Source of the DNA: Phaeosaccion multiseriatum
Lineage: Eukaryota > Protista > Ochrophyta, other classes
Assembly: GCA_965112735.1 (NCBI GenBank)
Contig: OZ218951.1
Coordinates: 1,240,001-1,304,000, forward strand
Length of the DNA stretch: 64,000 nucleotides
Direction of reading: 5' to 3'
Shown: positions 16,038 to 54,307 of the stretch, piece after piece
Position numbering within the stretch: the stretch's first letter is position 1
Layout of the letters: each line of letters starts with the position of its first letter
Notes under the pieces: generated by a model
Databases searched by the model: none
The model's input: only the letters and a program-made list of their open reading frames with translations
Told to the model about the DNA's origin: nothing
Position numbers and translations under genes: made by a program

Positions 16038-16457
16038 TATGCGTCCCCTGGACGAACGGACTCGCGTTCTTGCAAGTGTGGCGGCGTGTCGAGGAAATCA
16101 GGATAGTTGACCTATCCCCGCGCTAATTCGCTGTTGCTCGTCAAGCTGAAATTTTTTCCACATCATTTGTAAATTGAACTGGAAGGCCATTTTCGGGAAA
16201 TTTGAAATTTATCAGAATTTTACGGAATGCTAAGGCACGTGGGCGCGTGCGTGGTGCCGCCCAGCCAGTGGGTAGCAGCACGCCTTCAGGCCCGCACTCC
16301 TCGGAGGGGCAGGGAGGCGGAAAAAAACAAACAAAAAAACTTCAGCCAGCACTGATCACGTGGGGCACGTCAGTGACGGGACGTCTTCCTCCTTGCTCTT
16401 AATTGTCCGATTCACTCCCAGCTCACACACTCTCTCCTCCTCATTCTCTCGATTCTC

Positions 16458-17877
16458 CTACTCACTCCCTTCGCCTTCATCCTCTTCCGCCGTCTCGTCG
16501 CTTTCATCATCATCCTCAATCTCCCTCCCAGTTCCCTTTATGGGAACTAGTCCCTCCCTCACCTCAAGCCCTTTGGGAAGGCGTGCAGGCAGTGGGTATT
16601 CCTCCCCAACCTTGAGCTGCAACAGGCCAGCAGGCAATCTGCCCAGAGGTTTGTCGTAATCTCGGCCCAGCTTGAGAGACCAGAGAGAGGAAGGGAGCTT
16701 CAGAGGGTCGGGAAAAAAGCTTCCCCACGACCACCTCCTCGATGCCACAAGGAAGCACCACCTGCTTCGTTCGCGGTCAAAAGTGAGCCTTTTCAGCGCT
16801 TCCGGGAGGACAATGGGGGTGTTGAGCCTCGAGAAAAAGGGTAAACCTTAGCTCCTCCAGTGAGCTGGGCTGAATCACCTCACAATTGAAGGCACAGCCA
16901 AATTTGATCTTCTTCAGCGAACTTGGCAGAGTCACGTTCATGTCCTGATAGAAGGCCGTGCCGATTCTGATCTTCTTGAGCGACGCAGGGGGCTCCAGAG
17001 GCCTGTTGAAACGCTCCCCGAGCTCCAGCTCCGCAAGCGAGCTCGGCAAAGTCAACTCCCCGTTGAATGTAGATCGCACGTCGAATTTGAGCTTTCTTCA
17101 GCGACGCAGGGAGGGCCAGATGTCCACAAAAATGCTCCCCCAGCGCCAGCTCCTCGAGTGAGCTCGGTAGAGTAAAACTTGATTGAATCTAGACTCAACG
17201 TGGAAGTGGATCTTCTTCAGAGAGGCAGGAAACTTCAGAGGTTTGTTGAAAAAAAACCCGAGCTCCTCCTCCTCCACACCACAAGGGAGGACCAGCTGCT
17301 GATTGAAGCCAACGCCAAAAATGATCGTCTTCAGCGAGGTAGGGAGTACAATCCGTTGGTTGAAATTCCTTCCGAACACCGCCTCCTCCACTGTGTCGGG
17401 TAGAGCCACGTTGGACTCATGGAAAGAGTGGAAGAACGAAACACGCTTGACCGATTTGGGCAACAGCGCCAAGACTTTCGCGGAGAGCACCTTACCACCG
17501 GTGCCCAGCCACAAAACGGTGACGCAATAAGTGCCCCTCTTGGAAATCTGTCCAGCCATTGTCCGAAGTCTCTTTGCATCGCTCTGCCCCCGACTGCTGC
17601 CCGCCTTCATGAGCCTTTCCCCAGGACCTTGTCTCTAAAATTGAGAAGTTTCCGCCCTCTCCTTTCAGCGCACTCAGCATGCCCAGCATACGCTGCCTCA
17701 CATCGCTAGGCATGTCTCTTCGAACACCATTGTGCGGGGCGTCACCTCATCAATCTCCTTGCACAGGCCATCGGCCCCACAGGGGCCCTGTCGGAAGTGA
17801 GGCGGGCCGCGGTCTTCAAAGCCGCGGCCTTTAAGGCCCTCAAAGCCGCGGCAGCGTTCCATATTGATGCGCTCCAT
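16458..17877 (-). pseudogene. Intronless FNIP-repeat (LRR-like) protein pseudogene, copy 1
   Basis: Repeats such as FGRNFNQRIVLPTSLKTIIF, FNKPLKFPASLKKIHF and LGERFNRPLEPPASLKKI are split over several frames (ORFs 17098-17610, 16777-17079, 16564-16761, 16458-16748). Confidence 0.85.
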
Positions 17878-17999
17878 GTCCTCTCTTCCTCTCCTTTTTC
17901 GGAAATCTCCGTGTGGTGGGGGGGGGGGGTTAGTTTTCAGTTTTCATTTCCTTTGCATCTTTCATTTCCTCTTATTTGCTTCACGGTGTGCTCAGGGCT

Positions 18000-20900
18000 A
18001 TGAGCGGGGAGCCTGAGGTCAAGCGGAGTAAGACGGCTGGGGCCGGTGGCTCCAAGCCGGTGATCAGCTTCCTCGACTACGGAGCCGGGAATGTTCGCAG
18101 CGTCCGGAACGCCTTGACCTCGTTGGGCTACACCATCAGCGACGTGACCAAGCCAGAGGACCTCGACGGCGCTCAGGTGAGAGGAAAGGACGGATTGTGA
18201 CGATATTGGCCTTCTCCCTCAGCCAGTCCCTCTCGCGCATTCCAGCGTCGACGGAGACCTTCGCTCACTTGCATGTCTCTGTTGCTCTCCTTGCTCCTCC
18301 CTTCTCCTTCCCTCCCCTCCCACCAGGTTGTGGTCTTTCCCGGCGTCGGTAGTTTTGGGAGTGCCATCAACACGCTCGACGCGCAGGGATTCACCGAGCC
18401 TTTGAGGCGGTACCTGCAGGCTGACAGGCCCTTCTTCGGCATCTGCCTGGGGATGCAGACCCTGTTTGAGGGCAGCGAGGAGTCAGTGGGACACAAGGGT
18501 CTGGGTATCATTCCAGGCACCGTCAAAGCCTTTGACAACAAGCAGGTGAGGAATTTTACATGTGGGGAGTGCCTACCATGGAGGGCGAGGCTTTTCCTTC
18601 CGATGGTTGCATATATCTCACTCCTCTCCCCACCCTCTCTTGGACCTACAACTCGAAGATCGACTCGGGTCACAGTCTTGTTACCTTCTTTTGATGTCCA
18701 ATTGCTTCGCCCCACTCTTGCTCACTCTAATCCACTCGGTGCTCCTCTATCCTGCTCTTTTCCGCTCAACTCTACCCCAATCTCCTCCCCACTCCTCTCT
18801 GCTCTTCTTTGCTGCTCTGGCCTCAGGTGACCTCCCCGCACATCGGTTGGAACGGAGTGCTGCAGCAGAAGCCGTCTACGGTGGGCGCGTGTCTGGAGGC
18901 GGATGACATGATGTACTATGTTCACAGCTACCGCGCTCTGCCCTCAGAGCAGAACAAGGACTGGGTCCTGTCCACGTGAGTTTGTGGCTCTACACGACTG
19001 CACGTGTGGAGGGTGTCGAATGCCTACTTGTGTATGCACATGTGCGCGTGTGCGGGCGTGCGTGCGTCTTTGTGTGTGTAGGTCCGCTTCCTCGCGCCCT
19101 TTTCTCTCTCTGGACTCCCTTTCTTGTTGGTGTGTGCGGCCCTCCCGAAACGTATCAGCTGCCCCCGCTTCCGTTCCAGCCCTTCGTTGCCCGCCTTTTC
19201 CCTCTAGTCTTTCTCCCCCACCGCCCCAGCCATCCGACTCCTCCTCACCCTTGCCCACTCACCACCCCCGCCCCCCACCCCCCCCCCTTCTCTCTGTCTC
19301 TCCATCAGATGCACCTACGGTGAGCCTGAGAACCCCGACTTTATCGCGGCCATCCAAAAAGGCAATGTCGTGGCCTGCCAATTCCACCCGGAGAAGAGCG
19401 GTCAGGTCGGTCTGAAACTGCTCAAGGTGTTTCTGGAGGGCCTGAGTGGAGACGGTGAGGCAGCAGCAACACCACCACCAGCACCACCAGCAGCAGCATC
19501 AGGAACAGGCAAGCGAAGAACGAGACTGGGCAAGCGTATTGTGGCGTGCCTTGACGTGCGTACAAACGACGACGGAGACCTTGTCGTGACCAAGGGCGAT
19601 CAATACGACGTCCGAGAAAGGGGGGGGGGGGGAGATGGCAATGGCGTCGTCGTCGCCAACGGGGGCACAGCAGTTGGTGATGCGGAGAAGGGGCAGGTGC
19701 GCAACCTGGGCAAGCCTGTGGAGCTGTCTGCGCGGTACTATGATGAAGGCGCGGACGAGATTTGCTTCCTCAATATCACCTCCTTTCGGGAGGGAGTGCT
19801 CGAGGACGCACCCATGCTCAAGGTGAGGGCGGTGGGAATGGGAATTTGGCAGTGAATGGGGATGGTGAGGCCAAAAGACGCGTATGTGCACGTGTGGGTG
19901 TGGGGATGATGGGGATGGAAGGCCTACTAACCAACTATGGCCGTGCGTGTGTGTGTGTGCCTTTTATTGCAGAGTCACGAACCTCTCTCACATACTCACG
20001 TACTCCCCTCCCCGTCTGCTGATTTGGTCGGTCGGCGGTGGCGTTGACAACCCAAACCCACACCCACATATTGTGTGTGGTGCCTGCCTGCCCACCAACC
20101 TACGCCCCCTTGCCCTGTTTATTGGTTCACCCAACCTGCACTGTAGGTGCTGGAGCGTGCATCAGAACGTGTGTTCGTGCCCCTCACCGTGGGCGGAGGC
20201 ATTCGCGGCTACACCGCCGCCGATGGACAAACCTACACGGCCCTTGAGGTAGCGGCGAGGTACTTTAGAGCCGGTGCGGACAAAATCTCGCTAGGCAGCG
20301 ATGCAGTCTACGCGGCTGAGACGCTGGGAGCAGGGCTGGGTGGTGGAGACAAGGACCCGGATGGCAGCAGCAGCATTGAGCAAATCAGTCATCGCTACGG
20401 CAGGCAAGCAGTGGTGGTGAGCGTTGATCCAAGGAGGGTCTATGTCAAGGCGCCTGAGGATGCCTCGACGCACAATGTGCTCCACATTCCCGATTACCCT
20501 GGGCCGAATGGGGAGCAGTATGCGTGGTACCAAGCCACTGTCAAGGGGGGGAGGGAGGGGAGGGATTTGGATGCAGTGGAGTTGGCGAGGAGATGCGAGC
20601 GGCTCGGGGCTGGGGAGCTGCTGTTGAACTGTGTCGATATGGACGGGCAGAAGAAGGTGAGGAGAGAGGAGAGGGAAGGAGGGCTATAGAGAGAGAGGCA
20701 GGGGAGGAGAGGAGGGAGGGAGGGAGGGAGGGAGGGAGGGAGGGAGGGAGGGAGGGAGGGAGAGAAAGGAGGAGGGAGGTGGAGAGAGAGGGGCATGTTG
20801 GAGCGCTAGTATATAGACCGACCCTCCCATCCTCCACACGAAAGTACAGTCTCTTTGAAACTACCTCTGCTCATGCTGTCAATCTGACCGCACGCCGCTC

Positions 20901-21883
20901 CCCCCCCCTTCCCTCCCCTTCATTCTCCTTCACTGCTGTGTGTGTGGGAGACGCAGGGCTTCGACTTGGTGCTAGTGAAGGCCATCATGTCTGCGGTCAC
21001 CATCCCGGTCGTCGCCAGCAGGTGAGTGACGGGCGTGTCATCGATATTTTGGATCGAGGAAGCGATTTATTATGGTCTAATCAACTGAAGTGAACTGAAC
21101 TCTTATCCCCTGGTATTTTGATAGCAGCCTCTGCTACGCTCTCTCTCTCTCTCTCCCCACGTTGTCAATGCTCTCTCCACTGCCCCACATCACCGATGAG
21201 GCCCTTGTGTTCCTCCTTCGCCGGCATCTTTGTTGACTTTCCGCCGCTTTGTGTATGCGTGTGTAATGTGTGTCGTGTGCGTAGTCTGATTACCGCTTCC
21301 AATATTTTACTGACACTGAAATTGAAGTATTGAAGTATTGAAGTATTTGCAACTATCCCTTCCGTTCTCCCCTCTACAGCGGCGCCGGAGCCCCCGAGCA
21401 CTTTTCGCAAGTGTTCGACGTCACCGACGTGCAGGCGGCACTCGCTGCAGGTGTGTCTACACACATGCACACACACACATACACACACGCACGCACACAC
21501 ACACACACACACACATACACACACGCACACACACGCACACATACAAACACACCGTTGAGGGGGGGTGCGGTGGGGGGGGGGCTGGTTCGAGCTGTACCTT
21601 GTATATAGCCTCTCTGCGTCTTTTTGTTCTTTGCTGACATACACGCCTCGGCCTCCCTCCAAACTTGCCCCCAATAGAGTGTGTCTGTGTCGCCACCTTA
21701 CGCCTCACCACCAGCCCCCTCCATACTCGTCTTTCTGTCTGCACCACACGTCCTTGTTCTTCTTGCTCTGCTTGTTATCATTCTCCCCCTGCGCCAGGCA
21801 TCTTCCACCGAAAGGAGGTGGCGATCAGCGAGGTCAAGTCGCACCTGAGGGAGAAGGGCATCCTGGTCCGCTCGGCAGCCTAG
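18000..21883 (+). CDS. HIS7: Bifunctional imidazole glycerol phosphate synthase (HisH glutaminase + HisF cyclase), ~596 aa
   Basis: Exons 18000-18176, 18327-18545, 18827-18975, 19309-19822, 20147-20656, 20957-21021, 21380-21450, 21798-21883 (1,791 nt). Motifs: [62 protein letters not shown]. Confidence 0.97.
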
Positions 21884-22597
21884 TACAGCTTTGCACTGTC
21901 CCGCAAAGTCCAGCACAGCGCGCCAGCAGGGTATCCCAGCACTACATGTTGTAATAGGCAGTAGGCAAGTCCTTTCAAAGTCGAAGCGGTGTGTAGCTGA
22001 CGAAGTTAGGGCTCAGGGGACCAAGTGGCAGCTTCACGTCTCGTTGGGGAGGGCGCCGGCTTATTGCATGTGCATTCGGAGTAATTATTGGCAGCGCCTC
22101 TCATTAATTTAAGACGAAAGTGTGTGGGGGGGGGGTGGAGGGAGGGGGGGGGTAACACGTTTGATTTGATTCCTGTAAGTCAATAAAAATCCCCGGGGGC
22201 CCACTCCGTTTATCAACTCGGGGGACGCTGAACACCTCAGCAGAGTCAGCAGAGAGGGAGGAGAGAAGCAGCACCGCGCGAGGTATGTTACGTGCTGGAC
22301 ATGTACAGCTTTTGCTGGATCCCCTTTCTCCCCTCTCTCCCGCTGCCCTTGGGCCTCCAACTCCTTTCGCGCCTCCTCTTGGCACGAACGTACTGGGCCT
22401 CTTTCCCCGCCCTCGTTCTTCTGTTATATTCTCACTGAACGCTGCTGTCCTAAACTCCGTCCCGCACTACTCAACCTTGTTCCAATGCAGGATCCTTCGA
22501 GATAGTCTGCTGGCTGGAGGCTGACTCACTGGAAAAAACGGCACCACGACAAGACTCCAGAGAGGAAGACGGCACAGTTACCGCGATCCATGGAGAA

Positions 22598-23155
22598 ATG
22601 ATTTCCTCGAGTTGCAGGAGAGGTATTGTCGGAGCTAGGAGAGCCCGTCTGCGGCGGGCTACTACTGGAGGAGGAGGAGGAGAGTTTTTGGAAGTGGAAG
22701 AAAGCTTCCTTGGCACGGCCGGGAGGAGAAGGAGAAAGAGCTGCAGCAGCGCTTGCCTGGGACGGGAGCCCATTCACAGCACATTGAATTGCGGTAGCCG
22801 CAACGAAAAGGTGCTGAATGGGGGAAGCGTGGAAGCAGCCGTCGTAGCGGTGGTGGGGGGAGGACAGGGGAGAGGTAGTAGCGCCACACTCACTAGAAGA
22901 CGACGGCTGGCACAGCAAGGGCCGCTGGCGATGGGGATTTCAATGCGGCTCCCGCCATATCCTCTGGACGGTAGTAAAAGTAGTCGAAGAGTTAGCAGTT
23001 CAAGTGCGCGTAGTAGTATCAGTGGTGGTAGTAGCGGTAGAAGCGTGAGCAGGACAAGCACCAGCGAGCAACAGCACGCCTACTCGAGCTCGACAAAGAA
23101 CTTGTCATCTATTGCTGTTGTGGAGGGAGTGTATCGCAGTGGCGGTAGAAGTAGT

Positions 23156-23187
<32 letters not shown>

Positions 23188-25425
23188 CACCTGTAGCAGA
23201 CGTGCAGCGCCCAGTTTCCGGAGTTTCCGGAGCTTAATGACAGTGGCGGCTTTGGCGTCGGCGGCCTGCTGCATAGCGGTGCCCTCAGCGGCCACCTGTG
23301 GTGACGGTAGCGGCGGCAGCGCGGGCTCCGTTTCCTCCCAGACACATCAGCAGCAGACGCCCGCCTCCATAGCAGCTTCAAAGGCGGCCCAAGCCGCCAC
23401 GGCCGCCACTGCAGCAGCCGCCGCAGTCTCGGCGAGTGCAGCATCGACTGCATGGGGGCTTCGGCAAAAGCTGCTTGCCGCAGGCGCGATGGCGTCGTCA
23501 TCCTCGTACGGTGGTGGTGGTGGTGGTGGTAGCAGCTTGAGCAATAGGATTAACGGCAGTGTGAGCATCAATAGCAGGATGAATAGCGACTGCTTGGAGG
23601 CCGGCGCGGACAGCACCTTCAGCTCCAACATCCCCATTTCAGCAACGTCCTTCATGGGGCGGACGGAAACGACAATGCGCCAGAGCAGCGGAGATGACAT
23701 CAGCAGTGGGGGTAGCAGCGGCAGCGGCAGCAGCAGCAGCACCAGCAGTGCTGGAGGGGGGAGCGGAAGGGCGGCCGCCACCACCGCCTCGGGGGGCAAG
23801 CACCACTCTTCCCCCGTCACGCCGCTGTTTACCAGTGCACAGGCCACAAAGGGGCATCGCTCTTACATGGAGGACGAGTTCTTTGTGGCTTTGGACGGAC
23901 GCTTCGCTGCTGTCTTTGACGGGCACGGGGGCGCGGGAGTTTCCAAGTATCTCCGTCAGAACCTGTACGCCCAGCTTCAGAGTCGCCTGCAGGCGAACAA
24001 GAGGGGTGGCAATAGTAGTACTACAAGTGAAGGGGCGGCTGAAGACAGCAGCAACAGCAGCGACGGCGGCGATAATAGCGAAAGCGAGCTGCCGCAGCAA
24101 AGCAAGGCGCAGCTGATCGAGGCCATGCGGGCGGCTTTCGCACAGGTGGATGAAGAGGTCTCGCAGGTGGGGCATTGGAGGTTCCAGGGGTCCACTGCGG
24201 TGGCCGTGGCGCTGCATCACGACCCGGAAACGGGCGAGTCGTCTCTCGTCACGGGGAACGTCGGTGACTCCCGTGCGGTGCTGAGCCGTAGGGGGAGGGC
24301 GATTGAGCTCACGCAGGACCACAAGCCCAACTCCGAATCCGAGCTGAAGCGCATCGAGGATCTGAACGGGACGGTGAGCTGGTTCGGCTTCTTGGATCCC
24401 GACACTGGGGCGCCGATTGAGGGCACGGGAGTGTATCGCATCAACGGAAACCTTGCAGGTAGGCGGGGTGCGAGGAGGCTCCCATCTACTGCCGTCATCC
24501 CCCATCCACTGCCATCACACTGACGAAGAAGAATCAAATGCTTGTACCCTGACAACCGTCGTCCTTCTTCTTGCCCCTTTTCACCGTTCTCCTCCTCCTC
24601 CTCCTCCTCCTCCTCCTCCTCCTCCTCCTCCTCCTCCACCTCCACCTCCTCCTCCTCCTCCTCCTCCTCCTCCTCCTCCTCCTCCTCCTTCTATGCTCCG
24701 ATCCATCTCTTGCACAGTCGCGAGGGCCATTGGCGACAGCAGCGAGCGGCCCTTCGTCTCTGGCGAGTGCGAAATCCGCTCCATCCCCAGTGACAGCGAA
24801 GGCGATCAATTCGTCATTGTCGCCAGCGATGGACTCTGGGACGTCATGTCCAGCGACGCTGCCGTGCAGTATGTACAAGCCGTCATGCAAGGTGCGGTGG
24901 GGGCGCTTCGAGAAGGCAACTCCTGCACGGGCAGGGGGGGCGAGGGAAGCGATCGACTGAGGCCTGTCAACATGAAGCTCAGTGACTGGACACAGCGCTA
25001 CGCCGACGATCGGGGCATGATTCGCGCCGCTATGATGTCTCGAAAGAGGAAGATGGCTCGCTACCTCACGTGAGTTAACGGCCATACGTGGAGGAAGGGG
25101 GGGAGTGATTGAGTGCAGTGATGAAAACATTTGGGAGTGAAGTGGAGTGAGTGAGTGGAGTGATGGAATGGAGGTGGGAGTGAAGTGGAGTGAGTGAGTG
25201 GAGTGGAGGTGAAGGAGGAGGGGGGCCTGGACTGGCTTGGATTTTTTTCTTTTGTATGTGGTACAACAATTATCTCTCTCATCTTCTTTCTTCCTCCCCC
25301 CTCCTCTCTGCATCTCTATTATTTTTGTCTGCTTTTGCTTCCTTTACTCTCTCTCTCTCAGGGAGGAGGCCATCAGGCGTGGAACGATGGACAATGTCAC
25401 TGTTGTCATAGTGTGGCTCTCTTGA
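22598..25425 (+). CDS. PP2C/PPM-family protein phosphatase with a long Ser-rich N-terminal extension; start uncertain (22598, 22931 or 23237)
   Basis: Exons 22598-24458, 24718-25069, 25362-25425. Motifs: GHRSYMED, VFDGHGG, GSTAV, NVGDSRAVL, LTQDHKP, LAVARAIGD, ASDGLWDV, GTMDNVTV. Confidence 0.93.
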
Positions 25426-25961
25426 ACATACCATACCATATTATATAATGGAGAAGGAGTCAAAAGGAAGTGGGGGGGGACAAGGCTTTAGTGGGGGAGA
25501 GAGAGCGCACCGGACTGGAGACCGCGGGTCCATTTCGTCTCCTGGGGCAGCAACAAGCGTTTGACGACTACAATGTACAAAGTAAAGGCAGGGCAGATCG
25601 GAGCAGGTGGTAGCTCTCGAACCTCAGGGTTAGGAGGATGCCCATCTAAATAACGGCGTAATAATTAGTTCACGGCATCATTTCCATCAATCTCTTTTGA
25701 CACGACAGCTCACACCCACCCTCACCCGGGGAGGAACCTTCGAGAAGCGAAGAGGAAAAGAGCTTCGGTGTAAAAGAGCGGACCACCCACTTCGTCCAAG
25801 GGGCCATACGGAAAGAGGATATATACACAGGTGTTAATATTAATTTTAAAAAAAATCAATGGGTTGTGTAGGCGTTCGAAGGCGACAGGCAGGCACAGAC
25901 ACGCGGGGCAGCAGCAGCAGCAGTGACACAATACAAAAAACATTCGCTGGTCTCAACAAAT

Positions 25962-28775: not shown

Positions 28776-28817
<42 letters not shown>

Positions 28818-31020: not shown

Positions 31021-31051
<31 letters not shown>

Positions 31052-40393: not shown

Positions 40394-40457
<64 letters not shown>

Positions 40458-43400
40458 TGATACAGCAGCAACACTTGCAGCAGCTGCAGCAGCAACTGCT
40501 GTTGCATCAGCAGCGCGAGAAGCAGCAGCAAGAGGAGCGCCAACGCCAAATGGAAGCCGCGCATGCTTCGGCCCAGCAGCAGTACCAGCAGATCCAGCAG
40601 CAGCAGGAGAGAGCCCAGCAGCAGCTGGAGTGGCAGCAGCAGCAACAGCAAGAGGACCTTGCAAAGCAGATTGCAGCCCTCCAGCAGCAGATGATGCAGG
40701 CAGGGGGGGGGCTGAACGGCTTCCAGCAGCAGCAACAGCAGCAGCAGCCCACGTCTCATGGCCATCAGCCGTACCCGTCAATGCCTCTGGAGCAGGCTGG
40801 AGGAGCGGGGGGAGGGGGGGGTTCCTCCTCCGGGCGGGGGGGCAACGACGCACCTTTGTACCGCCACGCGAACCATGTGGGGGCTGTTGGTGGTGGCAGT
40901 GGTCAGCAAGGACCAGGCCAAGGAGGAAACCGTGGGGGCTGGGGAGGGGCAACAGGAGATGGGAGAGGTGGAAGAGGAGGGAGAGGCCATGGCCGAGGAG
41001 GAGGAGGGGGAGGAAACATGGCTGACGGCTTTGGAGGGGGGGGGCAGCACGGTGCTTCCTCAGCTGGAGAGGGGCGGCAAGGGTACCTCAACGCGGAAAC
41101 CCAAACCCCACCACCACCGCCCTACGGCTGCGCAGGAAGAGGAGGAGGAGGCGTCAGCTTGTCTGAGGGGATGCAAAGAGGAATGGAGGGAGGGGGAGGA
41201 GGAGACGGCGGTTCCTGGTTGCAGGGAGACGACAGCAGCTACTTGCCCGGACAATTGCTGGACACACTGGTGACTAACAGCTCGGCGCCTTCTGACAAGT
41301 CAGGAAAGTCTAGCAGGGGAGGCAGGGGTGGTGGGAGGGGCAGCAGGGGAGGAAGCAGGGGTGGGAGGGGTGGCAGAGGAGGCAGGGGAGGAAGGGGCAG
41401 GGGGAGGCCCCCCGGCAGGAGTGCCGCAGCCAAGGCCAATGGGAGGAGCTACGCCTTCTCTGATGATGGCTTCTCTAGTGAGGAGGAGGAGATTGAGGTC
41501 AGATCGCCATCCAAGGGACCCAAGTCGGCCAAAGCACAGGAAGACAGCGCCACCAAACGCAAGAAGGGGTGAGTGAGTGAGTGAGGGAGGAAGGAGGGAG
41601 GGAGGGAGGGATGGCAGTGAGTGAGGGGGTGGATGGGGAAGTGGGAATGAGGGAGTGAGGACACAAAGGGGATTGTGCGACGGGCCTCACGTAAGGTTCA
41701 CGGTTGACTTCCTGTGCTGTTCGCTGACGTATGTATGCTTCGCGCTTCCCCTCTTCCTCCCGCCCCCTTCACCCCCTTCTGTCCTGTGTGTGTGTACGCA
41801 TGCGTGTGCGTGTCTTTTCGAACGCCCACTACTGTGATGGTTGCGTGTCTTTTCGAACGCCCACTACTGTGATGGCTGCGCTGCTCCGCCCGCCCGCCCC
41901 TTCCATATTAAAAAACGCCACCATACAGAGCCCAAGCCAGGAGTAAGACACCCAAGCCGAAAGCCAAGCCGGCGCTCGTGTGCGGCGTGTGCCAAACGGA
42001 GGTGAACGGAGCATTGAACGTGACGGAGTGTTGCGTATGTCGAGGCCCCTTCCACTTCGAGTGCGTGGGCCTGGAGGAGGGGAACCCCCTTCGCCGAGGG
42101 GCCTACGCGTGTGAGGCGTGCTGTGTCGCGGCGGCCGCGGAGGGCAAGGAAGGGGTGGAGCCGGGGGCTCCTGTGAACTCGGTCATCGCTGCCGTGGACC
42201 GGTCGTGGTTGGTCAAGAGCATGGTCCCCACCAAGAAGAAGGGCGGAGGAGCATTGGCAAAGGATGCCGCCGCTGCTGCCATAGCGGAAGCGATCAATAC
42301 CTTTGTGCCCCAGCAGGGCGATTTTGTGTTTTACTTCCCTGAGGGGCACAGGAAGGTATTGGAAGTATTCCCCGAACCACGGGCTGTGCACTTGGCCGAG
42401 CGCCGACCGCTGTGGCTGGCGGCCAAGAATCGCAAGCGTTCCGTCGAACCCAGCCTCTTGTGCAGGGTCAAGGCGGTGTCCTATGAGTTCCCCACTGCGG
42501 GGGATGCATACACGCTCTTCGACCACTCGGCCATTACAATGGTGATGCAGTTGGACCCTGTGCATCCTCCGTCCGGGGCGGCAGCGGCTGCAGCGGCGGC
42601 GGCAGCAGCAGGAGTGAGCTTGGAAGGAGGGGCAGGGGCAGGAGGGCACGGAAGAGGGGGCAGAACCAAACCCTTCACCGTTTCTCTGCGCCCGATTAGC
42701 ATGGCAGAGTTTGTGGTGCCTGTGGAGAGGGTGAGCAAGGCAAAGGAGCAGGACTACAGGTCCGGAGACCGCATCGGGATGGAGTTTGCAGACACGGGCA
42801 TGTTCGAAGGGACCGTCGAGGGAGACCCTGTGGGCGACCCGAGGTTCGGTACTCCCGTTTGGGACGGTTTGCTGGTCAAGTGGGCGGATAACGACGTCAA
42901 TGCGGTCAATGCGTGGGAGGTAGAGCGGCTCTCCTCGACGGCAGGCAGCAGCAGCAGCAGCAGCAGTAGCAGCAGCAGCAAGAAGAAGAGCCCTCGAAAG
43001 GGGAAAGGCAAGGCGAAGGGGACGAAAGGGGCGAGTAATGTGGCCCCTGAGCTGTCTGCCGAGGCGCAGCACGGAGCAATGCTGCTGGCCTGGGCTCTCA
43101 TTCGCGACCGGACAGAGCGACTCACGCAGGTGCGTAGGGAGTGGGTACAAGGGATAGGGTTGTGTATGTGTGAGTGTGGGTGTCGACCCTCTGCCGCCCC
43201 TCCGCTGATCTTCACTTCCTTCGAGCCGACACCGCCCTTCCCTGTCTTCCAACTCACCCACCCCTCCCTTCCCCTCCGCCGCACGCCCCTCTCTGCCTTC
43301 CCCTGCCTTGTTCATCTCAACATCCCCTCTCCCTTCCTCAGGCCCAATGTGCAGCCGCAGATGAGGCGCTGCAAAACCTCTCCGAGAGAGAGGCAAACGA

Positions 43401-44079
43401 GCTGTCCATGTTCTTTCCTCCTGTGACGGACCAAGTCGCCCCTGGCTACAGCAGCGAAATCGCCCTACCCATGTGTGTCGACATCATTGTGGAGCGCCTC
43501 AGGAGCAGCTACTACCGCTGGCCGCAGGCGGTGATGAGCGACTTGCAGCTCATTGTTCGCAACGCCGAGGCGTACAATGGAGTCGACAGTGGTATTGCTC
43601 AGATGGCCAGAGCCGCGATGCGGACGGCAGAGGCGATCATCAAGAAGGCTTTTGCAGGTGCAAAGGGCAAGGATCCCCCAGCTTCAGCAGCCCCCCCAGC
43701 GGAAGAGGGAGATGAAATCGAAGAGGCAGAGGAGGAAGAAGTAGCAGCGCCTGTTACGCCTCCTTCCACTGCAGGAGGAGGACGGGGAGGGAAGTCGAGA
43801 AAGGCAGGGAAGGGGAAAGGAGGCAGGGCAGAAGCAGAAGCAACAGCAACAGCAGCAGCAGTGGTGACGCCCTCCTCAGCGGCAAAAGGAGGGGGAAGAG
43901 GAGGAGGAAGGGCGAAAAATGCTGGCAAGGGCGGAGGTGTTGAAGCAGCATCAGTGACTCCGTCCTCAGGAGGGAGAGGAGGAGGAGGGAAAGTGAAAAA
44001 GGCAGGCAAACGGGGAGAAGGAGGTGGGACGGAGGACGCAGGGGTGGGGCGAGGGAGCCGCCGGAGTGGGAAGAAATAG
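28355..44079 (+). CDS. Giant chromatin-reader protein (~3,815 aa): DDT, WHIM1-like, PHD, AT-hooks, BPTF/DDT-PHD-type conserved blocks, coiled-coil/polyQ, second PHD, BRWD/PHIP-type ancillary domain, bromodomain
   Basis: 14 phase-consistent exons: 28355-30332, 30508-30658, 31387-31492, 31858-32005, 32278-32378, 32691-32865, 33103-35505, 35917-36137, 36381-36497, 36663-37715, 38028-38243, 38729-41568, 41929-43129, 43342-44079 (11,448 nt). Motifs: VYALLRSLS...LDAMNWP, CIICDSGGNLICCDQCPRAYHVKC, KRGRGRPRK x2, CGVC...CCVC...FHFEC...CEAC, FVPQQGDFVFYFPEGH, APGYSSEIALPM...NAEAYN. Confidence 0.85.
35681..35755 (+). repeat. Intronic 25-bp minisatellite x3 (TCTTCGCACTCGCCCCTCATCCACT)
   Basis: Three head-to-tail copies with no spacers. 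Confidence 0.95.
38575..38720 (+). repeat. Intronic (CACT)n array next to the acceptor at 38728
   Basis: Read directly from the sequence. Confidence 0.9.
41807..41875 (+). repeat. Intronic tandem duplication, 35-bp period (TGCGTGTCTTTTCGAACGCCCACTACTGTGATGG x2)
   Basis: Two exact 34-nt copies separated by one T. Confidence 0.95.
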
Positions 44080-44529: not shown

Positions 44530-44569
<40 letters not shown>

Positions 44570-44572
44570 TGC

Positions 44573-44633: not shown

Positions 44634-44658
44634 TACAAGTCATGTCTGTCTGCCAAAC

Positions 44659-44740
44659 TCATTGAGTTACTCCTCCAGCCGCCGCCCCCGCCGCCGCCGC
44701 TCTCTCCGCCTCCTCTTCCTCCTCCTCCTCCTCCTGCTGC

Positions 44741-44775
<35 letters not shown>

Positions 44776-47700
44776 TATCACCAACTGCTGCTGCTGCTCC
44801 TCTTCGAGCTCCTGGAGCTTGAGCTTCTTGCTAATCTTTTGCAGCTTCGCACAGAGTGTGGCAGGGGCTGAAGTACTGAGCTTGTTCATGATCGGGGCCG
44901 GTAAGCTTCCCCTGAGGTCAGTGTGGACGATCATGGTCAGCAGGCACCCCCCAGTGGATACAGGCACCATGAGGAAGCCACAGAGCATGACGTCACCCCT
45001 GACGTAGCCATTGACCTTGAGGGGGCGCGGCAGGCAGAAGGGGGAGAGAGGGGGGGGGGATGGAGGGAGCGGGGGGGAAGTGAGCGAGAGTGGAAGCGAG
45101 AGAGAGAGAAGGGAGAGAGAGGGGGGGGGGATAGAGGGAGAGAGAGCGAGAGAGAGAGGGAGAGAGAGACAGAGAGAGAGAGAGAGGAGAGACAAGAGAG
45201 CGAGCGAGAGAGAGAGAGAGAGCCTCCGTTTAAACCCACCATGGGCATTCGTTCGTGGACGGTGGAGCGGTTGCAAAGGTATGTAGTGCCGTCCTCCAAG
45301 CCACCCCACACGGAGAGAAGAGTGAAGTCGCGAGGTGCGGTGGGCCAGATTGGCTTGTAACGGGTGCGCTTGAAGGCTGCTTGGTGACCTGGCACTGCCT
45401 CGATCACCTGTGAAGTCACGGTGGAGTGGGGTGGGGTGGAGTGGGGTGGGGTGGGGTGGAGGGAGGGAGTGAATGGGTGAGTGAATTGGTGAATCAGTGT
45501 AGCGGAGGGGAGTGGAGTGGAGTGGAGTGGAGCGGAGAGGGGTGGAATGAATGAAGTGAATTGGATCGGAGGGAGGGAGTTGGCGAGTTGGGGGTGAGTG
45601 AGAGTGAATGGGTGGGGGAGTGGACCACGGGCGCACAGACTGTCACAGACCGGGGGTGGGGTGAGTGGACAGATGTATGGATGGATGGAGATGGACGGGT
45701 GGAACAGAAACACTCATGACACGACACAGCCACCCTCCCTCGCCCCTCCCGGCGTCCCTCCCCCCGTCCCTCCCTCCCTCCCTCCTCTCCCTCCTTCCCT
45801 CCCTCCCTCCCTCCCTCCCTCCCTTTCCTTTCTCCCTCCCTCCCTCCCCTCCCTCCCCCATTCCTTCCTTCCCTCCCTCCCTCCCTCCCTCCCTCCCTCC
45901 CGTCCCTCCTCCCTCCCTCCCTTCCTCCTCTCTCACCTCAATGCAGTCGAAGAGGTCATCGTACTCCCCAATGCGCGAGTCGTCAAGCAAAAAGTCAAGC
46001 ATGGTGGCAGGGTTTGCTTCCAGAGGCACGCGCACGCGAATCATGTTCCAGATGGTGCCAGGGACCACGGCCTTCCACAGCCGCACGCCGCTCTCTCCAC
46101 CGTCCCTGGCCAGGGCCCAGTTCACCTTTTTCAGTTTCGGATTCGGTTTCAGTGTCAGTGTCGACAAATCAAATCGATCATAGACACACTACATATATAC
46201 ATCAATACCAATCACATAGAAACCAGCATCGATCACGTGGACATCAATAAATCGATATCGATATCGAGCTCACCTGCGGCCCGTCCATGCACTCTCCGTC
46301 GCTCGCCAAGGCCAACATGTCTCTCAGGGCCGCCTCTCTCCGTTGCTGCACCTTTAAGCGCATTGCCTCGGCAGGTTCCAGCAAGAACGACGAGCGGCGA
46401 GTGTGCCCTGTGCCGGCGCCACCACCCACTGTCACCCCCTCTCCTCCCATTCCAGCCCCCCCCTCGGCCCCTTCTCCTCCCTTTGCCACCGCGGCTGCTG
46501 CAAAGGCTGCAGCTTCCGCTTCCTCCCTCTCAATGTCCTCTTCCTCTGCAGACAGTTCCGAGAGCGTGTCCTCGTCGCCCACTGCCATCCCCCTCCCATC
46601 CTCCTCCGCCCCCTCCTCCCCCTCCCCTCCCTCCTGCTCCTCCTCCCTCTTCCCCTCCTCCCCAGACGCGTTGCAGAGACTCGCAATGTCCGCGATACTA
46701 TCCTGAGCGTCACCACTGCGAGCCCCCATTCCCATTTGACTGTGACCATGGTTGTGGATGAGTTGACGCGCATCTGCCCCCTCCAAAGTCTGCTCCACCA
46801 CCCACTTGAGCTCTTGCAGGATATGAATAGGCCCTATGAAGTGACTGCAAGCCTCAAGCTCCTCGAAGGCGGGCAGGAACTCCGAAAAGCAAAGCTGCGT
46901 GAAGAAGGTAACTTCGCTTTGCTGCTGTATCACCAACTGCTGCTGCTGCCGCTGCCGTTGCCGCTGCCGTCGCCGCACCTTCTCTTCGTCCTCGCCGTCG
47001 TCGCCCTCCTCCTTCTCTTCTTCGGTCAGTGCTCCCCAGAACCTCCTCCCCACCCTCCTCCCTTGTTGCCACAGCTGCCGCCGCTGCTGCATACCCCATG
47101 AGAAAGCACCTCCTTCCTGATCCTCCTCCTCCCGCTCCTCCTCACCATCCTCCTCCTCCTCTGCCACCTGCACCTCTCTCTTGGGCACGATAACAAACCC
47201 CGAAGTACCCAGTCTCCCCCTTACGTACTCAGCACAGGGGGGCAGGGCAGGGTGCTCTACCGAAGCATAGGCAATGATGCCGCCCCCCCCGGGCAAAGCA
47301 TGGAAGATCCTTAAAATAACAAAATCGCGCTTGATGCGCTGGCGGCGGTGGGTGCAGGTGAACCAGTAAATAGCGGTGTCGTCGGCGGCACCCTCGCCCT
47401 CTTCTGCTCCTCCCCCTGCTGCTGCTGCTGCTCCTTCTCCTACTCCTGCTCCTCTGCCCCCGGCTGCTGCTCCTCCTCCTCCTCCTCCTCCTCCTCCTCC
47501 TCCTCCTCCTCCTCCACCACCCGAATAAGAGGCGGCGTCATCAGAAAGGGCAGCCGCGCCCACCGCCGTCGCCGCCGCCGCCGCCGCCGCCACAGCTGCC
47601 GTACCACCAACAGCAGCACCAGAAGGAGCAGAGGAGGGGCGGGGGGATTGGGAGTTGGAGTTGAGCGTTTCTATGACTACCTGCCGATCGACCACATAGT

Positions 47701-48024
47701 CTGGGCCAAGCATTGCCGCACTCTCCAGCAAGATGCCGGAGAGCTCGTCGGCACTTGCTCGTACTGTTGTGCTGGCCCCCAGCCGGATCTGTGCATGTGT
47801 TGACAGATGACAGACAGCCAGCAGTGGTTGGTCATACAGAACAAGTTACAGCAGTACAGTTAAGAGTACAGCAGTTGGGTGATATAGCGGCAGAGCCAAA
47901 TAGGCAGGAAGAGGAGGAAAGAGGAGGATGAGGGGGAGAGAGAGAACGAGTGAGAACAGAGACTCACTCATACACTCACACATCGAGAGAGAGAGAGATG
48001 GAGAGAGAGAAAGAGCGACACACA

Positions 48025-48078
<54 letters not shown>

Positions 48079-48454
48079 ACGGACTGCTTAGGCCTGGGCT
48101 CGGGGGCTCAGGGCCGTTCCCCGCACCTTCTTGGTACCCGGGATCGGGCACTTGTAGAGCGCCATGTCCGCTGCTTGCGCTGGCGGTGGAGGCGCGTGCG
48201 TGGAGGAGCTGGTGTCAGGACCGCTACCGCTGCCCATATGACTACCGCTGCTGTTGCCGTGCCTCAATTGCACCCATTCAATGGAGGCGTCACTGGCCAA
48301 GCGCTGCACGGACCCCATGATGGAGCGAGCTTCCGACAAGGCATACGTACGACTGATCCTCGGCAGCGGCGCCCGCTCGTCCGCCAGGTCCACAAGAGAG
48401 GCACAGGAGGAAGCGCGGCTGTGCGAGCCCCACCCAGTGCCGTGGATGCTGCCG

Positions 48455-48491
<37 letters not shown>

Positions 48492-48599
48492 GGTTATTGT
48501 TGTTGCCACCGCCGAGCAGAGGCTGACCGTCTCTGCTCTCATCGTCGTCTCGCCTCTGCCTTTGCCCCGCCCCCCATCCCCACCCGCCTCCTCCTCCTC

Positions 48600-48645
<46 letters not shown>

Positions 48646-51600
48646 TGTTGCTGGTGCTGCCTCTGCGATGCCGCCGCTGCTCGTACTGCGTATGATAGGG
48701 CCCGACGTTGTCCGCGAGCGGCGGCGAAGTGGACCCCTTCCCCTTCCCATGCCCACACCAACACCCCCTCCCCCACCCGTCCTCCCTTCGCCTCCTCCTT
48801 CCTGTGCGCGTTCGTCCTCACCTTCCTCATCGAAAAGCAACGCTTGCCCTGCATCCGATGTGTTGCTGATGAACGAGCTGTTGTGTATCAAGCCTCCTCC
48901 TCCTCCTCCTCCTCCTCCTCCTCCTCCTGTGGCGTCCGACATACTCCGCTGCTCTTGTATCACCAACTGCTGCTGTTGCTGCTGCTGCTGCCCACGCCCC
49001 AACAGCGTCCCCCTTAGCACCATCCTCTGTATCTTTCGCATGAGTCGATAGGAAGGTTTCTTGGAGAGTCGATTGATGACCGTCGCCGGCAGGGCACCCC
49101 CCAGGTCCACATGACTATACATGAGCACTTCACTCCCCGCCACAAGCTCATCCTGCGCCCGGAAACCTCCCCCCCGGGGGTGGTGCTGCACGAGGGAAGC
49201 CTGGTCCAGCCCGTTCAGGGTCAGCACTGAGTGGGCGTGGGCGTGTGGGTGTGCGTTTGCGTGCCCTGCTACAGGGGTAGGAGCACCACCACCGGGCGTG
49301 CCACCACCGCCGCCACTACCACCACCACCACCACCACCACCACCACCGCCCTGACCTCCACCTTCCCCGCCCGCGCCTCCGCTGCCTCTCCCTCCTCCTC
49401 TTGCACCACCACCACTGCTGCTATCCTCCTCCATCCTCCCACCCCCGCCCACTCCGCTCTCACCACCACCACCTGCTCCTCCTCCTCCTCCTCCTCCTCC
49501 TCCTGCTCCTACTCCCCCTCCTCCCCCACGACAGGCCGCAGCGGCAGAAACTGCGGCTGAAGCGGCAGCAGCGGCGGCTGCACTATCGCCCACAACTTTC
49601 CGGAGCTGAAAGGGCGACACCAGCGCAGGCGTAATTACCCACCCACACGACACAATACTCCCCCTCACGTACTTGGGCGTCTCGGGAAAGTTGGGGTGCT
49701 GCACTGATTTCGTGGCAATCACCACCGTCCCATCCGCAAATTCCTCCCACGTAGACTTAATAACAAAGTCCCTCGGTCGCGTCGGCCACACCGCTTTGTA
49801 GGAGCTCCATCGTATGCTGGTGCGGTCGTTGACTCTCTCCACGTGGCGAATGCTATCGAACATGCCGTCATACTCGGCGATTCTTGAGTCGTCAATAAGC
49901 AGGCTAAGAAGCTGCGCCGGCGTGGCCTCACAGTGCATCGACGCTCGGATTCTACCGAGTGAAGCACCGCGCACTTGACTCGTGGCCACCCGTATTCCTC
50001 TCCGATCTCGCACGACAAACCAGGGGCTCGTGCCCGGCCTCGGTGCGTCGGCCACAGCCGACAGAAGGTCTGACACCATAAGATGTTCGTCGGACTGGAA
50101 ACCCATGTTGCTGGAGCGGCGTTGGAGCTGCGATTGCGCCTCCAGAATGGCCGAGTGAGGGTCCTCATGCACGTGTGCTGCTGCTGTAACACCAACTGGT
50201 GCTCCTGCTGGTGCTTGCCCTCCTCCTCCTCCTCCTCCTCCTCCGCCTCCTCCTCCCCCGGCCCTTTCCTCCTCTCTCTCTATCTCCCTCTCGCTGTCGT
50301 ATTCGTCCTCTCCGTCTCCGATCAGCCACTCCTCTCCTCCCTCTAACAGTCCCTCAATCTCCGGCTGAAACGTCCCCTCTTCCGCACCGCCATCCCCAGC
50401 AGCAGCAGCCGCAGCCGCAGCCGTAGCAGCTCCTAGCGCTACCGCGGCGGACACAGACACAGGCCTCCCCGGTCTCCCACTTGCTGCTGCCGCTCCCTCT
50501 GCTATCGCTGCCACTGCTGCTGCCTCTGCCGCGTCCCCCTGCCTCTGCTGTACCACCAATTGCCGTTGTTGTCGCTCCTCCAGCCGTGCTTTCTCCCCCT
50601 GGTGCTCTTCTCTCAGCAGGCGCAATGCCTCTTGCTGCTTCCACAGCAGCTCCTCTCGCTCGCTTTGATGTACTTGCTTCAGTTGCTCAGGTAGAAGAGA
50701 CTTGGCTACCTCCTCTTCCTCCTCCTGCCTTTGTCTCCCCTCACTTCCAGCGATCAAGCCTGACCAGGGTGAGATGCGCCCTGCTCCGAGCAGCTCAGTG
50801 AGCCGACCCAGCCGGCCCGTCGCGACCATTGGTGTTGTGGCAGAGCTCTGACGGTTCTCTGGCGCTCCATGTTCGGACGTGCTTCCTCCCCCCCACAGCA
50901 ACGAGAGACCCCCTGCTGCCCTTGCTGCCCCCTCCTCTGCTCCTCCCTCCCCTCCCGCCGCACCACCACCAACACCACCAGCAGCAGCAGCATTGGCTGC
51001 CATCCCGTGGCAGAGCGCATCCCCACTGCTGTTGCGTCTGAGCGCTTTGCCAGTGTGCAAGGACGGGGACGAAAGCCGATCTGTGCTCTGCGCGCGCTGC
51101 CCCATCCATAGGCTGTTCCATAGCCCAGTGGTTACTCTATTGGCTGAAGGGTTGCCTTCGGCGGAGTCCCACGTACCTTGATAGGCACTCCGGATGCTGC
51201 TTCCAACCATGGATGACAGCGCCAATGGTCCAAGGCGTGCCGAGGAGGGTATCGTAGCATCGACGAGAGCCGCACCAGCACCAGCACCTGCACCGACAGC
51301 TGGCGATGGAGCAGTCACGGCGTCAGGAGCAGAGGAGGCTGACACTGCAGCAGAGGGGGGAGCTTCCTCCTCTTCTTCGCCCCCAGAGGCACTGCGGCTT
51401 TGTTCCACGTCTTCCCTATCTACTAACCCACGACGCTGCTCACGATGCTGCACACCCGTGGTACTCGTACGCGTAGCCTCCTCTCTCTCCTCTTCGTCCT
51501 CTTGCTCCTGCTCCTCCTCCTGCTCCTTCTCCCCCTCCGCCTCCTCCTCCTCCTCCTCCTCCTCCTCCTCCTCTTCCTCTTCTTCTTCCTTCTCCTTCGC

Positions 51601-52264
51601 CTGCTGCTGTTGATGATGTCCGACGCTTACATCCGCCCGCTCTAGACTCAAGTTGCTTGCTGCTATGCGGCGGAGACGAGTTTGACAAGGGGAGGGAGGA
51701 CCACGCGAGTCAGTGGGCATCAACGGGGTGGATGTGCCTGGCTTTATGGACTAGAAGAGCGGGTGCAGTGGCGTACGGGGGGAGAAAAGAGATGGCATCT
51801 TCAAACAGCACCCCACCTGACTGCTCTCATCGTCTCTGCTTACCCTGTGTGGTCCCACTTCCCCTCTCTGCTGCTTCTGCTTCTGCTTCCCTCGCCGCCG
51901 TCGCCTCTCCACCCTCGTGGGTTGCGCCTTGTCGCCCCTCCCACGTCCCTCTGCCCTCTTCTCCCCAGGAGCTTCCATTCTGCTGCAGACGCCAGTCCAG
52001 TAGAGCAACGAAGCCCAGGTTACATCCCACCCACAAGACAAAGTACGCGACTGAACCAGCGCTCCAGAAAGTAATCCAGCTCAGACCCACCACCGACACC
52101 ACCACACAGCGCCCTCGAGTAGACACAGACTCTTCGAAGTACTGTATGACAGCATTGTCTGCGGCACGCACCCCGCGCCCTCGCTTCTTTCCTCGGATGC
52201 CCTTCCTAGCCTCTCTTGTTCTACCATCCACGGGCGTTCCAGGCGCCGCCGCTTCCGATGGCAT
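44659..52264 (-). CDS. Membrane-anchored protein (~2,060 aa) with three START lipid-binding domains
   Basis: Exons 52264-51844, 51662-48127, 47788-46274, 46125-45937, 45407-45240, 45015-44659 (6,186 nt). START motifs: YKAVWPTRPRDFV...SVQHPNFPETPKYVRG; IKRDFVIL...SVEHPALPPCAEYVRG; YKPIWPTAPRDFT...NGYVRG...HTDLRGSLP. N-terminal hydrophobic hairpin. Confidence 0.88.
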
Positions 52265-52665
52265 AGCGTAGAGAGAGAAGAGCCTCTTCTGCCGAGGGCG
52301 GGAAAGAGCTCGTGCTCCTGTCGATTGAGCTTGCGTGCGTTGGCATCTAGAGACGAGTTTGGCCGATGGTAGTTTGAATCGAATATGCTGTGGGTTACGA
52401 AGAAAGGAGCGCACCGACGGGAGCGACACTACACTCCGTCAGTAGCACCACGATCAGTAGATGTTCGAGTCCAAAGCGACAGAGCTCATGGATATGGATT
52501 AATATACTTAAGAGGGAGGGAGGGACTGAAAAGGAATCTTCCCAGCTGAAACTAAAACTTTTCGGATTTATCGTCTCCGGTCTCCGGGGGCGTCCAGAAT
52601 GTATTCCATAATTATGAAGCCGGGGTACTCCCCCCTGTTCAAAGGGGCTGGTAAGAGAGGGGCGT

Positions 52666-53856
52666 GGAGGGCACCAATATGGAATCAGCTTCTGCTGAAG
52701 CAGCGGCGGCTTTGAAGACCGCGGCCCGCCTCATTTCCGACAGCGCCCTGTGGGCTGTGCAAGGAGATTGATGAAGTGACGCCCCGCACCATGATGTTCA
52801 AAGCTGGCGTGCCTAGCAATGTGAGCCGATCAACGGCCGGAGCCCTCGCCCGCGGGGGGGGCAACCAAGCGGGGTATGCTGGGCATGCTGAATGCGCTGA
52901 AGGAGAGGGCGGAATCTTCTCCCTCTCAGGGACAAGGTCCTGGGGAGGGGCTCATCATTAAGACGGGGAGAGGGCAGGGGCAGAGCGATGACTGCGCACA
53001 AAGGCTGGACAGATTTCCAAGAGGGGCACTTATTGCGTTATCGTTGTGCGGCTGGGCCCCGGTGGTAAGGGGCTCACCGCGAAAGTCTTGGCGCAGGTGC
53101 CCAAGTCGGTCAAGCGTGTTGCGTTCTTCCACTCTTTCAATGAGTCCAATGTGACTCTACCCGACACAGTGGAGGAGGTGGTGCTCGGAAGGGATTTCAA
53201 CGAACCGATTGCACTCCCTACCTCGCTGAAGAAGCTCACATTCGACGCGCAATCTACATTCAACAGGGAGTTGACTTTGCCAAGCTCGCTTGAGGAGCTG
53301 GAGCTCGGGGAGCGTTTCAACAGGCCTCTGGAGCTCCCTGCGTCGCTCAAGAAGATCAGAATCGGCACGGCCTTCTATCAGGACATGAACGTGACTCTGC
53401 CAAGTTCGCTTAAGAAGATCCGATCAAATTTGGCTTTGCCTTCAATCATGAGGTGATTCTGCCCACAGTTCACTGGAGGAGCTAAGGTTTACCCGTTCCT
53501 CGAGATTCAACACCCCCATTGATCTCCCGGCTGCGCTGAAAAGGTCGCTTTTGGCCACAAATTCACGAAGCAGGTGGTCCTGCCTTGTGGCATCGAGGAG
53601 GTGGTCGTGGGGAAGCTTTTTTTCCGACCCTCTGAAGCTGGGCCGAGATTATGACAAACCTCTGGGCAGATTGCCTGCTGGCCTGTTGCAGCTCAAGGTT
53701 GGGGAGGAATACCCACTGCCTGCACGCCTTCCCAAAGGGCTTGAGGTGAGGGAATATGCTCCCATTCCCCTGATCTGGGCGACGGTCTTTTGTCGCGAGA
53801 GTGATGATGAAAGCGACGAGATGGCGGAAGAGGATGAAGGCGGGGAGAGTGAGTAG
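52666..53856 (+). pseudogene. Intronless FNIP-repeat protein pseudogene, copy 2 (inverted paralog of 16458-17877)
   Basis: Nucleotide-level match to the reverse complement of copy 1, including flanks (e.g. GCTTTGAAGACCGCGGCCCGCCTCA). Frameshifted across ORFs 52876, 53046 and 53551. Confidence 0.88.
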
Positions 53857-54202
53857 GAGAATCGAGAGAATGAGGAGGAGGGAGTGCGTGAGCTGGGAGT
53901 GAATCAGACAATCAAGACCAAAGTAGGAGGTGTGCAGGCACGTCATTCAGGAGAGCTCATTCGACCCCCACCGGGTGATCGCGAAGGGTTTCCCCTTGAC
54001 TGATGCAAGTGCCGCTCGGGATCAGCGAGGGGGGGCGGAGGAGAAAGGACCAAGCTTTAGTCTTTGTATGTAGTCATTTCGGGATGAAGGGAAACGCACA
54101 TCCACAACCCCTCTTCCTCTCCCTCCTCCTCAACAGTATAGGAAGGTAAGGTGTTCCGCAGCGCTGGTTTCACTCGCTTTTAAAAACTGAACTTAACTGA
54201 AC

Positions 54203-54307
54203 TGACGTTGCGAGCATTCCCGGTTCCGTGGTCGAGGAAGCTGATCACCGGCTTGGAGCCGCCGGCCCCAGCCGTCTTACTCCGTTGACCTCAGGTTCCC
54301 CCCGCAT
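54203..54307 (-). pseudogene. Decayed duplicate of the first ~105 nt of HIS7 exon 1
   Basis: Reverse complement reads ...CCTGAGGTCAA-CGGAGTAAGACGGCTGGGGCCGGCGGCTCCAAGCCGGTGATCAGCTTCCTCGACCACGGAACCGGGAATG, matching 18000-18105 with a frameshift. Confidence 0.93.

Follow-up and report, generated by a model that had tools for sequence, protein, structure and literature searches.

We report two sequences that are duplicated in inverted orientation within a 64,000-nucleotide stretch of the Phaeosaccion multiseriatum genome (contig OZ218951.1, positions 1,240,001-1,304,000, from a 67-Mb assembly of 22 contigs), hereafter the window. The first sequence is a gene made of FNIP repeats. The second is the start of HIS7, the gene for the fused glutamine amidotransferase/cyclase (imidazole glycerol phosphate synthase) of histidine synthesis, which was identified by its Pfam GATase and His_biosynth domains. 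The best and most economical explanation is an old, fixed inversion of ~34.5 kb that arose in a single event duplicating both cut ends, and we consider this history probable. A staggered-break inversion had been predicted at this position from the sequence alone. The order of the duplicates, their equal divergence, their copy number, and the finding that the two FNIP copies are each other's nearest relatives all support that reading.

Order and orientation of the duplicated ends

Comparison of the window with itself by blastn returned three inverted matches and no others of note. These matches pair 16393-17173 with 53921-53154 (83.5% identity, E = 0), 17209-17828 with 53357-52703 (75.8%, E = 1.7e-142), and 18000-18104 with 54307-54204 (91.4%, E = 4e-36). 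A separate repeat search of the window recovered the same inverted arms. Global alignment with MAFFT merged the two longer matches into one FNIP block in which 52653 to ~53915-53941 pairs with 17888 to ~16373. The FNIP pair is identical in 1062 of 1196 aligned columns (88.8%) and is interrupted by many indels. The blastn identities are lower than this value because of register slips among the FNIP repeat units.

With p denoting the FNIP gene and q the HIS7 start, the map reads p q' ... p' q. Each sequence occurs twice, the copies are inverted, and one copy of each sits at each breakpoint (pairings 17828/52703, 16393/53921, 18000/54307, and 18104/54204). The right end carries the reverse complement of FNIP followed by the reverse complement of the HIS7 start, which is a permuted order, since a plain inverted duplication would read q p. 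The blastn and MAFFT results thus bear out the order FNIP(-) HIS7-5'(+) ... FNIP(+) HIS7-5'(-) given in the original prediction, and its coordinates are right to within about 20 bp. No homology was found between the left and right flanks, and a search of the breakpoints for tRNA or other RNA genes found none. The features of the two ends are as follows.

15315-16037, minus strand: flank L, the first large open reading frame (ORF) of the left-flank gene, not duplicated; no Pfam match
16373-17888, minus strand: p, left copy of the FNIP-repeat gene, a pseudogene; Pfam FNIP (PF05725), E = 4e-12 to 1e-15 on ORF pieces
17889-17999, no strand: u, left-joint spacer of 110 bp that now forms the 5' flank of HIS7; unmatched at the right end
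18000-18107, plus strand: q', HIS7 start (codons 1-36), the live copy of the pair, running on into the remainder of exon 1
18001-21900, plus strand: the HIS7 gene; Pfam GATase and His_biosynth, exon-by-exon matches to a relative
18108-52652, no strand: M', 34.5-kb block, probably inverted, as judged from the flanking duplicates
52653-53941, plus strand: p', right copy of the FNIP-repeat gene, a pseudogene; Pfam FNIP, E = 5.6e-19
53942-54203, no strand: unmatched 262-bp spacer of the right joint, between p' and q; unique in the genome
54204-54307, minus strand: q, HIS7 start, the dead copy of the pair; lacks 1 bp and has four conserved residues replaced
54308-57247, minus strand: flank R, a 336-bp AT-rich spacer that is unique in the genome, then the 867-amino acid ORF of the right-flank gene

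The spacers at the joints were compared with the rest of the window and with the genome. Local alignments of the left spacer (17889-17999) against 52300-52652 and 54308-54643 were not significant, and its syntenic segment ranked only in the top 4-5% of window segments. The right spacer (53942-54203) was not significantly similar to any window segment, including the left flank and exon 1 and intron 1 of HIS7. Neither of these spacers, nor the spacer at 54308-54643, has a further copy in its own genome.

Decay, age, and copy number of the duplicates

The left FNIP homology extends from ~26 nt upstream of the ATG (17862) to ~85 nt beyond the stop (16458), and the right copy runs from an ATG at 52679 to a stop at 53854-53856. 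Both copies are broken, and the lesions that disable them differ. The left copy has a pair of frameshifts within an extra 234 bp that leads to a stop at 17098, and a +1 insertion at 16838 that leads to a stop at 16777. The right copy has a 7-bp deletion that leads to a TGA at ~52988, and +5 and +2 insertions at 53417 and 53464 that lead to a stop at 53454; its exon 1 carries 7-bp and 10-bp deletions. The left copy had been called a pseudogene, which holds, and the right copy is frame-broken too. The ratio of replacement to silent substitution rates (dN/dS) for the pair is ~1.15, based on 24 replacement and 7 silent changes. The differing lesions and this ratio therefore suggest that an intact gene was copied at the DNA level and that both copies have drifted since the event.

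One feature of the reading frame is common to both FNIP copies. A stretch of 17-25 codons (~53544-53620 and 16771-16715) lies out of the usual repeat frame between compensating frameshifts. The canonical 'VVLPCGIEEVVVG' reading of this stretch sits in another frame, and a T-run is found at ~53620 and 16715. This stretch is best read from the sequence as an ancestral compensated frameshift that predates the duplication, kept the ORF open, and was not disabling. A frameshift near the T-run was considered as a common disabling lesion and rejected, because the compensated pair keeps the frame open.

The two FNIP copies also differ in length. The extra 234 bp in the left copy (~17095-17328) amounts to ~3.5 repeat units and is absent from the right copy, which indicates gain or loss of repeat units. 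The adjoining 189-nt tract is 96% identical between the copies, possibly reflecting gene conversion between the inverted copies. The pair also holds a 43-bp indel. At the left edge of the FNIP homology there is a cluster of short palindromes (CACGTG, CGTCAGTGACG, and GACGTC) at 16355-16385.

HIS7 has ~10 exons that are collinear with the gene of a relative. Its ATG is at 18001 and exon 1 ends at a GTGAG donor at 18177. The gene is single-copy, as judged by the single genomic match to the 180-amino acid hisF exon, and the left HIS7 is intact. The duplicated piece begins 1 nt (possibly 12 nt) before the ATG and extends to +107. The live start retains DYGAGN, a conserved motif of the amidotransferase domain. 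In the right piece DYGAGNVRS reads DHGTGNARN, and there is a 1-bp deletion together with the four replacements at conserved residues, and the right piece is a dead fragment. Three of the four duplicated copies have therefore decayed. The hisF exon (20147-20689) has an ORF of the same length in a metagenomic relative with 71% identity (10001-10543 of its locus), and the HIS7 exon boundaries look conserved from this equal length. HIS7 intron 1 (18177-18326) is absent from the same relative.

The divergences of the two pairs were compared as a measure of their ages. The FNIP pair differs at 134 of 1196 positions (11.2%), which corresponds to a Kimura two-parameter distance of 0.122, with 0.069 at synonymous sites and 0.073 in the 3' untranslated region. 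The HIS7 pair differs at 10 of 107 positions (9.3%). The divergences are statistically indistinguishable (Fisher p = 0.63), in a test of low power owing to the short HIS7 piece, and are consistent with the two pairs being equally old. Similar divergence of both segments is what the original prediction had led us to look for.

Searches of the 67-Mb genome were used to count the copies. The HIS7 piece occurs exactly twice. The FNIP query gave >200 genomic matches, among which the two window copies are each other's nearest relatives. The other matches cover repeat units alone and reach at most ~72% identity over comparable lengths, and the non-repeat ends are private to the window pair. Apart from the FNIP repeat units, the duplicated sequences are thus not dispersed repeats. 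Many FNIP copies carrying the same HIS7 fragment would have pointed to a mobile element, and we found just the two. A gene-capturing mobile element of the Pack-MULE or Helitron type is excluded because the HIS7 piece has two copies and the FNIP copies are mutual nearest relatives; the flanks and spacers are also unique, and the flanks are unrelated to each other. A chimeric retrocopy was rejected because no A-run follows the FNIP copies and the HIS7 piece lies antisense to FNIP on its 3' side.

The proposed inversion and competing histories

The layout of the duplicates leads us to infer an inversion, its polarity, the mechanism of breakage, and a change of HIS7 promoter. The ancestral order would have been left-flank gene(-), FNIP(-), START(+) ... 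HIS7(-), right-flank gene(-), where START is a gene with START domains. Two offset pairs of breaks would then have been made, one ~1.5 kb apart and bracketing the whole FNIP gene, and the other bracketing the first ~107 nt of the HIS7 coding sequence. Rejoining the interior in reverse and filling in the offsets would leave FNIP and the HIS7 start each twice, in the arrangement p q' [inverted block] p' q. A replication template-switch event could have reached the same outcome. Both FNIP copies would have decayed independently after the event, and the stranded HIS7 fragment would have decayed as well. The intact HIS7 and the left FNIP relic are arranged head-to-head with their ATGs only 136 bp apart, and under the inversion model HIS7 must therefore be transcribed from a new 5' flank. 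The spacer at 54308-54643 would be the original HIS7 5' flank. The copies are in cis and 34.5 kb apart, as an inversion requires. We estimate that random reinsertion would land that close in ~0.15% of cases (100 kb/67 Mb).

Several points weigh against the inversion. It cuts a single-copy gene within ~12 bp of its ATG and separates it from its former 5' flank, which should usually be harmful, and an indispensable HIS7 would have needed to run from the new flank at once. Neither joint is seamless. At 110 bp and 262 bp, the unmatched stretches exceed the usual additions of simple end-joining; they may be junction filler or, given the 43-bp and 234-bp indels within the FNIP pair, indels of later date. 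The FNIP divergence varies along the gene: it is 6% in the repeats, and the 5' end and a C-terminal patch reach 20-27%. This unevenness weakens the dating and may be due to local hypervariability or to sequence exchange within the inverted pair. An insertion of a permuted copy would yield an identical present-day map. Finally, the uninverted order was found in no relative. Five relative loci were compared with the window by tblastn and tblastx, including one from metagenome/Logan data, one from a metagenome, and those of Chrysoparadoxa and Scytosiphon. All are distant, and they match the window in HIS7 or START alone. The nearest HIS7 relative in the protein collection searched has 71% protein identity in a search with the 180-amino acid hisF exon, and the nearest START relatives have 55-62%. 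The genes next to HIS7 or START in the relatives are missing from the window or map to other places in the genome: HSP33 is on contig 8, gelsolin occurs on both contig 12 and contig 14, and the PH-like gene was not found. The upstream gene of the relative gave no BLASTP match to the right-flank ORF, and a codon-degenerate pattern for HIS7 exon 1 found no match in metagenome contigs.

The strongest competing history is that a permuted copy was inserted and nothing was inverted, so that the left arrangement of left-flank gene, FNIP(-), and HIS7(+) is ancestral. The copying of a ~1.7-kb piece with FNIP and the HIS7 start would have involved replication template switches, a tandem-duplication joint, or a DNA circle. 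Cut open within the spacer that separates FNIP from HIS7, the piece would then have been placed in the opposite orientation between the region upstream of START and the right-flank gene. HIS7 then keeps its own promoter and there is nothing harmful to fix. What would have been left uncopied coincides exactly with the 110-bp spacer that separates the start codons, an open-chromatin-like place for cutting a circle, and translocation through a circular intermediate is documented in cattle (Cs29/Cs6, PMC12235870). The cost is that three new joints are needed, compared to two, that the opened circle must have lost the 110-bp spacer at each of its ends, and that the 262-bp filler at the circle joint is still unexplained. 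In a genome of 67 Mb, a free fragment is unlikely to land as near as 34.5 kb to where it came from without a strong local bias in reinsertion, and this route is far less often documented than inversions with paired duplications. The right-hand unit corresponds to the left-hand one circularly permuted, a feature that fits both histories and does not discriminate between them. The equal divergence of both pieces is likewise expected. We regard this insertion as unlikely.

The same contig carries a second scar. An inverted duplication of 3.6 kb with 90.1% identity (3,260,515-3,264,089 and 3,272,148-3,275,785) brackets ~8 kb. It is of similar age to the FNIP/HIS7 scar, and with a single duplicated sequence it is weaker evidence of inversion; its origin may lie in a plain inverted duplication or in a one-sided inversion by staggered breaks. 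A more speculative proposal is that, with no inversion at all, a small extrachromosomal circle containing FNIP and the HIS7 start was cut in the promoter gap and reinserted in the germline as the right-hand unit. It would then be a natural, fixed case of a gene fragment transposed by way of a circle in a stramenopile alga. A related proposal is that several ~90%-identical inverted-duplication scars in this genome record a burst of one repair pathway. Such proposals are quite doubtful.

A history in several steps was also weighed. Two independent inverted segmental duplications could have landed reciprocally by chance. Alternatively, an inverted FNIP copy could have entered next to HIS7, generating a target duplication of 107 bp, with recombination between the two FNIP copies later flipping the interior. 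The FNIP family is large and turns over fast in this genome, stretches of the FNIP pair that are 96-98% identical would fit with the inverted copies having exchanged sequence later, and the unmatched spacers at both joints suggest later events. Such a history needs at least two rare events that mimic the signature of one step, it makes the equal ages of the pairs a coincidence, and no further copy of either piece marks an intermediate stage. We give it only a small chance. An assembly artefact, with the interior block or one end mis-oriented or mis-joined, has next to no chance of being correct: the region is rich in simple repeats and the joints are known from the assembly alone, but the duplicates are ~10% diverged with many private indels and so are not one locus assembled twice, the window is free of N and of assembly gaps, and each joint sequence occurs just once in the genome.

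Neighboring genes and known systems

Besides the body of HIS7, three further genes were located within the probably inverted block, which runs from HIS7 to the START gene.

22598-24523, plus strand: PP2C gene; Pfam
~41978-43426, plus strand: PHD-domain gene; Pfam
~44830-51723, minus strand: multi-START gene; Pfam and collinear START matches to relatives

The START gene (44830-51723) appears as one long gene with three START-domain regions and is collinear with its counterparts in Scytosiphon, Chrysoparadoxa, and two further relatives. The Scytosiphon counterpart is annotated as two adjacent genes (985 and 387 amino acids), and one annotation may split or fuse the gene. The ORF pieces of the left-flank gene (13098-16037, minus strand) gave no Pfam match even at E = 5, and those of the right-flank gene (54644-57247, minus strand) gave no Pfam match. 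The labels 'PhyH' and 'TRP-like' that had been proposed for these genes are thus without Pfam support on the ORF pieces, and the names are unconfirmed.

The window is ~59% G+C, eukaryotic, intron-rich, and full of trinucleotide and tetranucleotide runs. A protein search placed the brown alga Scytosiphon and Chrysoparadoxa as the closest named relatives of the START-domain protein (55-59% identity), in agreement with the source genome being that of a brown-alga-related stramenopile. Long coding microsatellites of (GAG)n/(CTC)n and related types occur at 5600-5730, 8070-8210, 10210-10390, 14740-14900, 24590-24690, and 54920-55090. They dominate the repeat output and yield spurious long 'inverted repeats' between distant genes. 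Tetranucleotide runs of (GGAA)n and (CCCT)n occupy spacers, for example at 2500-3000, 5200-5300, and 14250-14400.

If the inversion is correct, the signature that polarizes inversions in Drosophila, human, and Chlamydomonas would work in brown-alga-related stramenopiles too, and inverted duplicates at both breakpoints would allow the history of a rearrangement to be read from a single genome without an outgroup. The locus would also be a natural case of a single-copy HIS7 that, despite a cut almost at the start codon, survived with a 5' flank of foreign origin, which would make promoter flexibility in this lineage testable. In other respects it is an ordinary scar of a structural variant, a tidy example of a known route to inversion that implies no new mechanism or system.

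The closest known parallel is in the Drosophila melanogaster group. Ranz et al. 2007 (PMC1885836) derived the arrangement p q' ... p' q from two pairs of staggered breaks. Such duplicates were found in 17 of 29 Drosophila inversions, in 6 of them at both ends, with lengths of 46 bp to 1.9 kb and an identity of 88 +/- 5%, and inverted duplicates at breakpoints were argued to polarize the change (PMC1885836). There as here, two ancestrally unique sequences each occur twice in inverted orientation with one copy per breakpoint, and most copies are decayed partial or whole gene copies. The 1.5 kb and 107 bp in the window, at 89-91% identity, fall inside the Drosophila range. In contrast, the present case is in a stramenopile alga, the block is small (34.5 kb), the polarity is read from a single genome, the joints hold 110-262 bp of unmatched DNA, and one break would come within ~12 bp of where translation of a single-copy biosynthetic gene begins.

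The same structure is described as dupINVdup among human structural variants (Brand et al. 2015, as cited in PMC5338099). On chromosome 16 of Chlamydomonas CC-503, a dupINVdup was seen arising, with flanks of 2.3-3.7 kb that partly duplicate genes (bioRxiv 10.1101/2022.06.16.496473). The architecture A C' B' A' C is the same as that of the window, and the Chlamydomonas case is also in an alga. Those events are recent or de novo, resolved by reads, and usually ascribed to replication-based template switching, whereas the present scar is old (~10% divergence) and fixed, and its mechanism is no longer readable from the joints.

Two other systems resemble parts of the structure. The cattle color-sidedness alleles Cs29 and Cs6 (PMC12235870) are circularly permuted copies of a contiguous source, as the right-hand unit looks to be, but they move hundreds of kb between chromosomes, whereas this 1.7-kb unit lies inverted, 34.5 kb from its counterpart, on one and the same chromosome. 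With inversions that come about by ectopic recombination between transposons or inverted repeats, the similarity is that the FNIP copies are inverted repeats bracketing the block. That route makes no second, permuted HIS7 pair, and the repeats here are not a dispersed, near-identical element.

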